DNA of 63,868 nucleotides, the filler included, from Lenisia limosa (Eukaryota > Protista > Breviatea), in NCBI GenBank assembly GCA_001655205.1. It is 14 parts of 14 records of this genome, joined end to end, with 100 filler letters (N's around TTAATTAATTAA, not from the genome) between each part and the next. Parts side by side here need not be neighbours in the genome. Positions count along the whole stretch, not along the records: positions 37,044 to 40,368 come from LPNZ01000366.1; 13 more parts are not named here. One strand, 5' to 3'. This document shows, piece after piece, positions 8,709 through 40,468 of this stretch (position 1 is its first letter; every line of letters starts with the position of its first letter). The notes beneath the pieces were generated by a model, which was not told where the DNA came from, searched no databases, and saw only the letters and a program-made list of their open reading frames with translations. A program made the position numbers and the translations under genes.

Positions 8709-9808
8709 ATTGAGGCAATAAAGAAGATAGAGGAGAAAACTACAGCTGAGGCGCTCCGTAAGTTTTCACCCCATAAAAAGAAGAATGTTGGTCGATATTC
8801 CCATAACTTGAGCTTACTTTCCAACAAAAGCCTTCATAGCTTTTGCGACAACAAACGCGGCGGGTGGTTTGGAATCTTTGGGGGCTTTACCTTCCAGGCC
8901 TCGGGACTTTAGATGGCTGGGGCCAATACCAGAATCGAGGGCTTCGAGAAGCTGTGATGGTTGAATAACATGAACGCACCAAATCGTGGGAATAGAGTGA
9001 AGTACAATTGTGGATATTTTTAGACTGCACAACGACGGGCTGTAAAATGTACCATAATTTATTTTTTTAACTTAACTTTTTTCTGTTGTGGTTTTCATTT
9101 TTATGCTTCAAAATGTGTACTGTAACTGACCAGTATCCCTCTGACTCTTTAGTCACACAGTTTTTCTCCTCCCAAAGGGTTTGAAGCGAGAATCGGCAAG
9201 AGGCCATTGATCAACGAACTGATGCTTGTTTTTTATTATTATTTTGAAATACAGGTTGATTATTATATTTTTTGGTAATATTATTATAATAAGCTGATGG
9301 GCAAAGCTGTTTCAAGATTGCTTTCGAGTGAAAAAGTTTGGATGAACACACAGGGACAACAGGGGATTTTCCTGATGTCGAACCTTGTCATTCTCTTGGC
9401 TTGTTTCTTCCAACTTGAAAAAATGAATAAAAAGGGATTTTTGGTTGTTGGGGGGTGGACTGGAGAGAAGAATGGACAGTCAGTTATCCTTATCCATCAT
9501 CTCTACACCTCTGACCGGAAAACAATATTTCTAACATGGTCACTTATTTGCTGTTAGTAAAACAACATTCATAGACAAATTTGAACACTGTGTTTGAAGA
9601 TGCTGCACTTGAAAAACCCCGAAGTTCCTACTTGAGTTCCAATTCAGGTAAGGAAATCTAGTCTGTCCTAGTTCAGAGGGGCGGGGGGGGGGGGNNNNNN
9701 NNNNNNNNNNNNNNNNNNNNNNNNNNNNNNNNNNNNNNNNNNNNNNNNNNNNNNNNNNNNNNNNNNNNNNNNNNNNNNNNNNNNNNNNNNNNNNNNNNNN
9801 NNNNNNNN

Positions 9809-37043: not shown

Positions 37044-39712
37044 ACCCATGCCACAAGCATCTGAAATGCAAGACAACCTCCTGCAGTCTATGCTCAGGTA
37101 TTCATCGTATGATTTGTTTGATTTGTTTGAGAAATGAACTATCCCCCCCCCCCTCCCCTATAGAGTATGAGATATATCATATATGTACATGTATATGATA
37201 TATTCCGAGTTAATTTGATCCAATACTCTCATTAAGGTCATCAAACTATTTAGTCGGAGAACGACTGCCCTGGATGATGGAGCCGACTCGGACAGCGACT
37301 GGGATAGTGACGAGGATGCCTGGGATGACGATTCAGATGGCGGCGGAGGCGGTGAGGGTGACGTCGTGCCTTCATGTCAAGTGCTTTAGAGATCAGCTAA
37401 TTTCAATTCTATAGGAGGACGTCCGGTTGACTTCTCAAAGTTAGCGCCGCAGTCTTTTGCAGTAGATGAGCCAGATTTTGCCCTGAACACACAAATGGAA
37501 TCGTCGCAGCCTCTTCTCTTGTCTGAAGAGACGGTGGGAGTTTATCAGTATTTTATTCTAGTCCTATCATTGATGCTCCCCAATCCCTCTGATTTCTTCC
37601 CACGATCACAGGTAGAGGACAGAGCATTGGACTTGGGGCCCGGGGGGGTGGCACCCCAGTATGAGACGTCGGAGCTTGATGGACTGGATGAGAAGTTAAT
37701 GAAGGAGGAGGAGGAAGAGGAACAGGAAGAGGAACAGGAAGAGGAAGAAGAGAAAGTGTCAAAAAGAGACGCGAAACTAGCAGCGAAACCAGTCTCCTCT
37801 AAAGCAAAATCTCTCGCGGTTGGTATTCATAATCCTCCCAATTTTAAATTGTTAATACCCCCCTATTTGATATTCAGAAGCCACCACCACGCCCAGCGCG
37901 TCCCTCTGTTTGTAAGCGGCGATCACATGATATTCTTATTCTTTGGTGTCTCGGTTTCAATTGTGATGATTTGTGTACTCATCCCTCAGCTCGTAGTTCC
38001 GGGCAAACAGCCGCGCCCAAGAAGAAGAAGAAGGGCTTTGGAGGAGGAGGAAAGCGTAAAAAGGTTGGAACTTCGGATTTGTCCCTGTTCAAATGGCTTT
38101 TTGACATTTTTTTAGAGTGCACCAGCCAGTATGATGGGACAATCAGGCAAGTAGGACAATTCTTATGATATATTGCCCCATATCCACTAGTTTGATATGA
38201 TCATCGTATAAAGTGATGTGAATATAATTCAAAAAGTGATATGATAGATGCGGGATGGAATTCTGACCTTCAGGGCCCATGCGGTCTGTCGGAGACATTC
38301 AGAAGGAAATGATGGGACTGGAGTCTCATGGCGGGCTTTTTGTTGAGGTTTGTCCTGTATTGATATGTAGTACTATGATATCATATGATGTAGTTTCTCG
38401 ATATATGTAACTCTATATCATATATATAATATGTTCTATGTATGTGAACATAGATTTTCATTTCTGCATGGACACTGAATATGACCCAACACTGATGTGG
38501 TTTCTTTCAGAAATACGACCCGACAATTGAAGACTCATATCGCAAACAGCAGTTAATTGACGGAGAGGTAAGTCCCTTTCCATCCTTTCGTCCACAAACA
38601 TTTCTTTTAGCTTATCATTGCTGGTATGCCAATTGATTCCTATGGTGTTACAATGCAATCTACTTCTATCCCTGATTTTATTGTAATGTCTTGCTATAAC
38701 AAAGCTAGGAGTTTTATCACACACCTTCAACATTCCAGTTTAAAACATTATCATCACCCTTCTGAATTAACTGTTCAGATGGTGATGGCTGAGTTTCTCG
38801 ATACTGCTGGTCAGGTACGATGGTTAAGCTCGGGTTTGAGCATACGACAAATGACAAATCATTGGTTCACTCTCTCCAGGAGGAGTTCTCTGCTCTCCGG
38901 GACTTGTATTTCAGAAGTCAACATGCGTCTATTTTGGTCTACGATATCACAGTGAGCAGCGATGTGTTGAGATGGATCATGCGAAGATACTGAGTAGCGG
39001 TAGTGGATTGGCTAATCTATTCAGAGCATGCGGTCGTTCCTTGAACTTGACGAGTTTTATGAAAACATGAAAAGGTGAAAAGGCTTTTGTCGGCAATGAG
39101 TAATGCTTCAGAGTAAAGGATGAGGACTTCCCCCTTGCAGTTCTTGTCGGAAACAAAACTGATCTTGACGAACGAAGAGAAGTCACCTATGAAATGGTTC
39201 GAAATAACAGGAGACGCTGCTCACACTACTTCGTTGATCTAATTGCCCCAGGGAGAGATCTTTGCCATTGAGCGCGATATGATGTTCTTTGAGACTTCAG
39301 CTAAACTCGGGCACAACGTGGGATGGACTGGTTTTAGGTCTTTGTTCCTGAAATGACTGGAGTAATATATACGACTCAATAATGTATTTACTCATAAGAT
39401 ATATTACAAGCCTGCTCTCTTAAAATGTAGTGTGCACTCCCATTTATGGCTGCCTCTAAGTTGGCCCTGACTTTTGCCGACTGGTGGGTTGTCAGATCTC
39501 CATCGTTACTATTGTAATATCGCAATAGAATCCTTTTGTGCTTCCTCTAATACTAACTATGTTAACTATTTGTGAAATAACAACTTCATCTAGTATCTTC
39601 ATAAGCGTCTTCCTACTCTGACCAGTCAGTGACCCCCACGATATGAAGATTACTACAGTCGGACCTGGGGGAGTGGGCAAGTCTGCCCTCACCATTTCAT
39701 ACGTGCAAGGAG
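37044..39712 (+). CDS. Large protein with acidic/low-complexity N-part and a Ras-family GTPase domain in G2-G3-G4-G5-(G1) order (partial at both ends)
   Basis: Phase-consistent exon chain from 37044 through KYDPTIEDSYRKQ (38511-38567), LDTAGQ (38779-38814), EEFSALRDLY..VYDIT (38880-38951), 39025-39074, LVGNKTDL (39112-39196) and FFETSAK (39252-39317). The P-loop MKITTVGPGGVGKSALTISYVQG lies downstream at 39643-39712. Confidence 0.8.
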
Positions 39713-39740
39713 GTATGTTGGTGGTTATGGGTTGATATTA

Positions 39741-40087
39741 GAGCTCCTGGCAATAAAGATGATAATATATATACGTATGTAGTAACCAAATATTAATATA
39801 AAATTTCTTGAAGCAAAAACAGTCATATTAATATTAATAAAATATTAATAAAATATTAATTATACTATTAATACATATTAATACAAAATAAAAGGAGTAT
39901 TAATAAAAATAATACTGAAGAAACAGAAAAAACAGAAAACGGAAGAACAAAAAAAATACGGAACAAACAACGAACAAAAAAAAAATATTGTAAAAAAAAA
40001 ATATCATATCATATACAATATTAACAAGAATATGAACAAAATAATACATATATTACTATTAATATTTATATTAATTGCCTGGAGCTC
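39741..40087. mobile_element. AT-rich MITE-like element F with 14-bp TIR
   Basis: TA|GAGCTCCTGGCAAT...ATTGCCTGGAGCTC|TA (13/14 match). One copy in the window. Confidence 0.7.
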
Positions 40088-40468
40088 TAGTTGTTATGTA
40101 CGTATTTTATGGAGCTTCTAACAAATTCCAACAACCATAAGAGCATTTTTCATGTGGTAGGCGCTAGTATTTCAACGAAAGCTCCAACCAAGACAAAATG
40201 CAAAGAGTCCAACATTCCCAAAGTATGGATGGGATGTAATACGCGTGCAGAATATGTTAGCTCTATTATAGATTACATTCTGGTAGTGATAATCTATGTA
40301 TAAAACCTGTTTATCTTCCACAGATGCCTATTCCTCCAAAGAAAAGGGTCCCTCCTCCAAACCCCCTGNNNNNNNNNNNNNNNNNNNNNNNNNNNNNNNN
40401 NNNNNNNNNNNNTTAATTAATTAANNNNNNNNNNNNNNNNNNNNNNNNNNNNNNNNNNNNNNNNNNNN

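Follow-up and report, generated by a model that had tools for sequence, protein, structure and literature searches.

The locus described here raises the question of whether a Ras-type GTPase can be encoded with its P-loop at the C-terminal end of the domain. It belongs to the breviate protist Lenisia limosa (GenBank assembly GCA_001655205.1) and lies in a window of 63,868 nucleotides, filler included, in which 14 parts of 14 records are joined end to end. The piece studied, positions 37044-40368 (3,325 bases, from LPNZ01000366.1), is eukaryotic DNA rich in introns; its + strand carries a single series of exons resembling a gene, in which the exon for motif G1 follows those for G2 to G5. This genomic order, G2-G3-G4-G5-G1, is real in the reads; the splice signals allow, but do not prove, a single circularly permuted protein of an undescribed kind.

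Seven exons bounded by GT-AG, here called A to G, with limits set by homology and by these boundaries, encode between 38274 and 39317 a Ras/Rap-like domain that runs from the Phe28 position through G2, G3, G4 and G5 (Table 1), and all six introns within the series are GT-AG. Thr35, DTAGQ, NKTD and SAK are kept in exons B-G, with Gln at position 61. GPGGVGKS, YDPTIEDSY, DTAGQ, NKTD and ETSAK are all present in Ras-like surroundings as judged by the Pfam profile PF00071 on separate exons, and the Ras peptides quoted in a preliminary description of this DNA were all recovered in place on the + strand; the collinear G1-G2-G3-G4-G5 order of the Ras family is not kept. The best matches in the PDB are residues 104-130 of R-Ras2 for exon F and residues 62-85 of Rab22, Rab21 and Rap1b for exon D. 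Identity to an R-Ras2-like protein is 52% for the core and 62% for the P-loop exon, so that the two appear about equally conserved and neither half looks decayed. By sequence, the domain is an ordinary member of the Ras family, close to Rap and R-Ras.

The start of the core differs from that of a typical Ras. The acceptor of exon A (phase 1; 5.5 bits, 92nd percentile) has CTGAC 8 nt upstream, and the non-Ras 5' part of the exon has a held-out coding score of 7.4; a reading of exon A as a decayed P-loop exon was tried and found no support. The Phe28-Ile36 stretch recurs in decayed but in-frame form (HFCMDTEYDPTLM) within the intron between exons A and B, at 38462-38500, 36 nt short of exon B; about 13 of 17 nt agree with the beginning of that exon, and the copy is debris of a local duplication. 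The intron after exon E (39075-39111) is very short, at 37 nt, and is fixed by homology (…NMK R/VKD…; slashes mark splice junctions).

The P-loop exon, the only one for beta1/P-loop/alpha1, lies with its ATG (39643) 325 nt downstream of the core on the same strand, and from this ATG reads GPGGVGKSALTISYVQG. It covers positions 1-22 of PF00071, its best PDB match is Rap1b residues 5-26, and its coding score is 6.4; judged from the sequence, an exact GGVGKSALT within 3.3 kb cannot be a chance match. The exon ends in a donor, GAG/GTATGT at 39712/39713, of phase 1 and 7.7 bits (95th percentile), and if this is left unspliced the frame reads through to a stop at 39733-39735, 7 codons after alpha1. 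No YDPT-like exon occurs in the 675 nt visible from there to the contig end, so the placement of the P-loop downstream of G2-G5, with no switch-I exon after it up to the contig end, stands as first described.

The arrangement recurs in a metagenome contig from ENA, ERZ3820729 NODE_868 (L001; 16,498 bp), which was retrieved by look-up of a 206-residue open frame; three exact look-ups of open reading frames all returned it. NODE_868 is base-for-base identical to the piece over 3,325 bases and reaches 13.1 kb further upstream and 20 nt further downstream (its end corresponds to 40388). Three assemblies, namely that of the window, the SPAdes assembly of NODE_868 (~32x) and the Logan words (0.99-1.00), agree base for base, and 99-100% of the locus words sampled are present in the DNA-like run X1. 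The locus is absent from other contigs, from JGI metagenome records in an exact DNA scan, and from Logan gene calls. A scan for GxxxxGK[ST], together with tblastn using every Ras exon, found no other P-loop or Ras exon in NODE_868, including its 13.1 kb upstream; a P-loop exon upstream of 37044, which the preliminary description had named as one half of a finding that would count against a permutation, is thus excluded for these 13.1 kb. The non-coding flanks of the P-loop exon and those of exon A share no homology.

How well the sequence would allow the two halves to share one reading frame was gauged by scoring splice sites against 12 introns of the locus itself, by a branch-point rule and by a codon model. 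The introns of the locus measure 37-211 nt, and CTRAY stands 8-20 nt before 6 of 13 accepted acceptors, as against 4.9% of all AG sites. From the donor of exon G at 39317 (5.3 bits), a candidate alpha5 exon, H, can be reached, whose coding score is 6.2-7.1 in the frame set by that donor and about -9 in the other frames; a score of 6.2 is attained by about 8% of stop-free non-coding windows and by 48% of held-out coding windows. The score drops past the donor at 39483, which itself rates 7.1 bits (94th percentile). Ahead of the acceptor at 39630 stand a run rich in pyrimidines and a CTGAC whose branch A is 9 nt from the exon, nearly the same arrangement as at exon A, and the intron 39484-39629 looks like a real one. 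The complete model is free of stops over 405 codons, if the donor of the P-loop exon is unused and the chain ends at 39733-39735, or over 419 codons, if 39712 is spliced to 40324 and the frame runs to the contig end. Should the donor at 39483 remain unused, the frame of exon H continues to ...SLLL and a stop at 39515-39517, without the Cys of a CAAX box. Read-through of exon G (VGWTGFRSLFLK, stop at 39354-39356) was considered as an alternative alpha5 and rejected: the alignment to Ras ends at NVG, the coding score is -4.0, and neither profile positions 150-162 nor PDB chains are matched.

On these grounds, a single permuted chain with the order G2-G3-G4-G5-G1 is tentatively placed first among the readings of the locus, at a probability below even. 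It is ranked first because the core motifs and splice sites are intact while the core has no G1 of its own, because the layout matches what is predicted for circular permutation by duplication (PMC3320104), and because nothing in the assembly points to the almost identical parent copy that a recently broken duplicate would require. The simplest origin would be an old tandem duplication of a Rap/R-Ras-like gene with complementary loss thereafter, in which the first copy lost its 5' exon and the second retained that exon alone, so that the original first exon, with start codon, beta1, P-loop and alpha1, would now lie 3' of the exons for switch I to alpha5. One transcript would then comprise at least seven low-complexity exons, exon A with its 20-residue linker and the Phe28 region, exons B-G, exon H as alpha5 and, beyond the intron of 146 nt, the P-loop exon, headed by a linker of 5 residues. 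This would yield a Ras domain cut between alpha1 and switch I, with its old termini joined by about 7 residues, and the chain would end 7 codons after alpha1 (39733-39735) or continue into the exon at 40324. Several features could be fossils of this history: the CAAX-like ...SLLL with its stop just inside the new intron, the old ATG, now internal, and the old exon-1 donor followed by a stop. The genomic order, the lack of any other G1 in the 13.1 kb upstream, the intact motifs and the frame-consistent signals are observed directly; splicing, folding and nucleotide binding by the reassembled site are inferred.

Other observations weigh against this proposal. The in-frame path from exon G through 39431-39483 to 39630, put forward in the preliminary description, does exist, but it is one of 38 stop-free GT-AG paths with at most two introns that connect exon G to the P-loop exon, and with so many, finding one of them open does not count as evidence. 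Exon H has an acceptor of -4.3 bits that lacks a branch point and falls below all 12 training acceptors, and shows no detectable similarity to the Ras alpha5 in Pfam (profile positions 150-162) or among PDB chains; the preliminary description placed its Phe at the 'NVxxxF' position, but the Val of 'NV' is not encoded if exon G is spliced at 39317. The acceptor at 39630 reaches just -1.5 on the weight matrix. The splice matrices were trained on only 12 introns of the locus and the codon model on about 340 codons. The P-loop exon still looks like a first exon: its coding part opens at precisely the canonical Met, position -3 is a purine, and a stop in the same frame lies 24 nt upstream. Its strong donor occupies the place usual for the alpha1/switch-I intron, and the strong acceptor further downstream, at 40324, is what would be expected if this exon opened a different gene or Ras unit. 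GTPases have, moreover, very rarely been permuted with success, which sets a low prior.

Expression and relatives weigh on the same side. Run searches found the locus in only one run, the DNA-like X1, and not in the study's only RNA run, a poly(A) metatranscriptome. Runs X1 and X2, which match 38514-38549, contain a different, canonical Ras in the same sample (…FIQNHFVEE/YDPTIEDSYRKQ/CTIS…) that is identical to exon B at 35 of 36 nt and appears spliced in the poly(A) RNA run X2; Ras transcripts are therefore detectable in this sample, and the permuted locus is not. The comparative searches ran exon by exon on unspliced DNA and are weak for that reason. An open stretch of 241 residues, used as a protein query, returned nothing but itself; exon A retrieved no relative from JGI metagenomes, and a word search around exon C gave no candidate. 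A HMMER scan of 1.84 billion representative proteins with exon F returned four weak matches: a spurious cadherin, two proteins with several Ras domains (P0003 and P0005), and an R-Ras2 gene model with an internal duplication. The repeat in the R-Ras2 gene model P0004 starts exactly at the alpha1/switch-I boundary. With single-exon queries, no relative of any kind was retrieved from protein or contig collections, and none with the same order, as the preliminary description had proposed to look for. That description's overall permutation reading is partly supported, by the genomic order, the break point, a second intron that looks real and the coding-like frame of exon H; it is left exposed at the acceptor of exon H, at the first-exon features of the P-loop exon and in the matter of relatives.

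Among the alternatives, the most probable is that the halves are not joined. A Ras-like domain without a P-loop would then end in exon H (stop at 39515-39517) or at 39354, no permuted protein would be made, the P-loop exon would be either an orphaned relic or the 5' exon of a transcript of its own, short or chimeric, and the Ras-like part would be a young pseudo-domain or a nucleotide-free module. Its own ATG, the purine at -3, the upstream in-frame stop and the retained exon-1 donor of the P-loop exon accord with this, as do the apparent decay at the end of exon H, which runs to a CAAX-like end with Ser in place of Cys, the weak weight-matrix scores of the acceptors that joining requires, and the decayed Phe28-Ile36 copy, which places rearrangement debris at the very locus; broken duplicates are also far commoner than successful permutations. 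Long-dead pieces, however, would not be expected to keep G2-G5, their splice sites and the P-loop exon intact and similarly conserved, and had the break been recent, a parent copy of nearly the same sequence should exist, yet assembly of the contig runs through without interruption. The intron 39484-39629, with its strong in-frame donor and branch point, and the fall in coding score after 39483 also speak against it, and we regard this outcome as rather unlikely. Less probable again, and by a clear step, is an arrangement of tandem Ras units, in each of which a low-complexity insert separates alpha1 from switch I. The second unit, whether its own gene or another domain of one protein, would have the P-loop exon as its G1, an insert beginning at 40324, and its G2-G5 past the contig end, while G1 of the first unit would have decayed. 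The phase-1 donor of the P-loop exon joined to the acceptor at 40324 gives an open frame (DAYSSKEKGPSSKPP...) similar in composition to the stretch before exon A, whose acceptor is likewise of phase 1; the coding score of this frame, at only +0.3 to +0.9, still exceeds those of the other two. Upstream, LGPGGVAPQ followed by SSKAKSLAKPPP parallels GPGGVGKS followed by SSKEKGPSSKPP, a likeness that 86 of 2000 shuffles equal, and proteins with several Ras domains exist (P0003, P0005). Against this stand the weakness of the decayed P-loop similarity, which is absent at the DNA level, the oddity of a long-dead G1 beside a perfect G2-G5 in the first unit, the lack of a second YDPT exon in the visible 675 nt, the competition of the strong donor at 40156 for the acceptor at 40324, whose exon starts with ATG, and the absence of a paralogous exon F among the 1.84 billion representative proteins.

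Two further explanations are less probable still. A canonical-order mRNA could arise from non-collinear DNA if 39712 were joined to 38274 by trans-splicing, by back-splicing or through an unseen upstream copy of the exon, giving a Ras of the ordinary G1-G5 order that carries 20 extra residues after alpha1. The donor and the acceptor are strong, at 7.7 and 5.5 bits, and share phase 1, and the junction ...SYVQG/GPMRSV...GLFVE/KYDPT is in frame, with a canonical Met at the start and exon H at the end; the phase match, however, has a one-in-three likelihood by chance, exon A equally continues the frame of exons that precede it on its own strand, the 13.1 kb upstream hold no copy of the P-loop exon, and genic trans-splicing is rare, with nothing at the locus pointing to it. 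This is very improbable, and an assembly artefact, in which assembly from metagenome data misplaced the P-loop segment 3' of the gene, is marginally more so. Contigs here are short, the two assemblies end no more than 20 nt apart in the Pro-rich exon, and the assemblies probably share the same reads, so that their agreement is not independent; all three nevertheless agree base for base, and the junction between exon H and the P-loop exon contains no repeat able to cause a misjoin. The remainder of the probability falls to other readings. Acceptors just before three ATGs had also raised spliced-leader trans-splicing or an operon, which may apply but is weakened by the fungal-type branch points at the locus.

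Upstream of the core, seven exons can be joined to exon A in frame, giving a stop-free model of 352 codons over 37045-39317, and the domain is likely, as first suggested, to be embedded in a larger protein. Its last link is the weakest step: the micro-exon reaches exon A in frame only through a GC-AG intron (CAG/GCAAGT; 38147-38273) or through a GT donor at 38128 that leaves a 13-nt exon, and if unspliced it meets a stop at 38152-38154. The micro-exon has a coding score of +2.8, and its other two frames score -3.1 and -2.4. Pfam recognised no domain in the upstream exons or in any of 47 long open stretches of NODE_868.

Table 1. Features of the Lenisia limosa locus (window positions; a slash marks a splice junction).
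Feature	Position	Strand	Description
Upstream coding exon, cut by piece edge	37045-37097	+	ends ...LLQSML; donor CAG/GTATTC; continues a Pro-rich exon in NODE_868
Exon	37254-37351	+	RRTTALDD, then acidic run with two Trp (DSDW, DAWDDD)
Exon	37415-37533	+	GGRPVDFSKL...LLLSEET; CTAAT ahead of acceptor
Exon	37612-37818	+	LGPGGVAPQ, then Glu-rich run, SSKAKSLA
Short Pro-rich exon	37878-37911	+	KPPPRPARPSV
Lys/Gly-rich exon	37990-38063	+	…KKKKKGFGGGGKRKK; GxxxxGK-like, Arg in place of the required Ser/Thr
Micro-exon	38116-38146	+	SAPASMMGQS; 31 nt
Exon A	38274-38347	+	20-residue non-P-loop stretch (GPMRSVGD...ESHG), then GLFVE, the Phe28 region
Exon B	38511-38567	+	switch I/G2 (KYDPTIEDSYRKQ...; YDPTIEDSY)
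Exon C	38779-38814	+	G3 (DTAGQ)
Exon D	38880-38951	+	switch II/alpha2-beta4; Ras profile 58-84
Exon E	39025-39074	+	alpha3
Exon F	39112-39196	+	beta5 and G4 (NKTD); Ras profile 101-143
Exon G	39252-39317	+	G5 (ETSAK); donor AAC/GTGGGA at 39317; Ras profile 126-149
Exon H, candidate alpha5	39431-39483	+	CALPFMAASKLALTFAD, Phe at N+5; donor CTG/GTGGGT at 39483
Candidate intron, H to P-loop exon	39484-39629	+	146 nt, typical length, in frame
P-loop exon	39630-39712	+	linker (C)DPHD, ATG 39643, beta1, G1 (GPGGVGKS), alpha1 (ALTISYVQG)
MITE-like insertion, AT-rich, ~350 bp	39739-40089		16-nt terminal inverted repeats, TA on both flanks
Exon	40324-40368	+	strong acceptor CCACAG/ATG, 8.8 bits (96th percentile); three frames open to contig end

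The only upstream candidates for a G1 of the core are two strings reminiscent of a P-loop, LGPGGVAPQ (37630-37660) and GFGGGGKRK (38030-38060), both weakly similar to the P-loop exon and each without the Lys or without Ser/Thr after the Lys, which may be a decayed original G1 or plain low-complexity sequence. The exon at 37612-37818 aligns locally to the P-loop exon with a score matched by 41 of 1000 shuffles (p ~0.04); LGPGGVAPQ was set aside as a decayed G1, the likeness being weak at the protein level and without significant similarity at the DNA level. The stretch 37045-37351, together with NODE_868 9100-9606, comprises RG- and PPGMP-type Pro-rich exons followed by ...LLQSMLS/RRTTALDD and the acidic run. 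We take this acidic run to resemble the central-acidic (C+A) end of the WASP/WAVE activators of Arp2/3, for which Pfam and PDB searches gave no support. Further upstream, NODE_868 649-1135 is an open stretch with RING-finger-like Cys patterns (CPLCQQ…, CPVCFEDY…CGHTFCNGC) and is probably an unrelated neighbouring gene.

Downstream of the P-loop exon, and 26 nt past its donor, sits an element resembling a miniature inverted-repeat transposable element (MITE) of the Stowaway or Tc1-mariner type, with near-perfect terminal inverted repeats TAGAGCTCC[T/A]GGCAAT and AATAAA at 39752. The acceptor at 40324 has two candidate donors, that of the P-loop exon at 39712 and one at 40156 (GTG/GTAGGC, 7.9 bits), 167 nt before it. 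Together, 40156 and 40324 could be a separate downstream gene with an intron in its 5' untranslated region and a start at 40324 (MPIPPKKRVPPPNPL...).

If the permuted reading is true, a third permutation of the GTPase fold would show that the C-terminal end of a chain can supply the P-loop, and switch I would come to lie at a free N-terminal boundary, which bears on how it is read by effectors and GTPase-activating proteins. Few loci would match it, too, in leaving the genomic intermediates of permutation by duplication (PMC3320104) legible in DNA. If the halves are not joined, it offers a clean example of an intermediate before or without fusion, and as a rearranged gene is of modest interest.

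Compared with canonical Rap1, R-Ras and R-Ras2 (PF00071), the locus has all five G motifs and the effector loop YDPTIEDSY, and its Gln at position 61 is like Ras and unlike Rap. It differs in having G1 after G5, a 20-residue non-Ras stretch before Phe28 and no CAAX Cys, and in placing the domain behind at least 230 residues of low-complexity sequence. In G-alpha proteins a helical domain is inserted between alpha1 and switch I. Their chain is therefore interrupted at the same structural point as that proposed for the cut at the locus; theirs is, however, an insertion and not a permutation, and the G1-G5 order stays.

Only two circular permutations of the GTPase fold have been described, the ancient YRG (YlqF/YawG) group, with the order G4-G5-G1-G2-G3, and the eukaryotic cpRAS, with the order G3-G4-G5-G1-G2 (PMC2430557), and the break between alpha1 and Phe28/switch I is, as first proposed, unlike either. 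The string G2-G3-G4-G5-G1 occurs in no paper of the literature searched. On a slightly more guarded estimate than that for the permuted chain itself, the locus may be a third natural permutation, one of a Rap/R-Ras-like gene in which only strand 1, P-loop and helix 1 have moved, within a low-complexity host protein and with its fossils kept. YRG proteins resemble the proposed chain in having G1 after G5 and in connecting the original chain ends through a short linker, but they are ancient TRAFAC GTPases of ribosome assembly that are not Ras-like by sequence, whereas the locus has G2 and G3 before G4. The cpRAS proteins are accompanied by a VWA or COG2373-like region (PMC2430557), and Pfam found no such partner (VWA/Sec23-24 trunk or COG2373-like) in the open stretches of NODE_868 or in the upstream exons. 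Like cpRAS, the candidate permutation at the locus concerns a Ras-family domain within a larger protein, of the kind scattered among eukaryotes; in cpRAS, however, strand1-helix1-strand2 is moved as a unit and the cut falls between beta2 and beta3 (PMC2430557), whereas at the locus only strand1-helix1 would move, and G2, in exon B, stays ahead of G3, in exon C.

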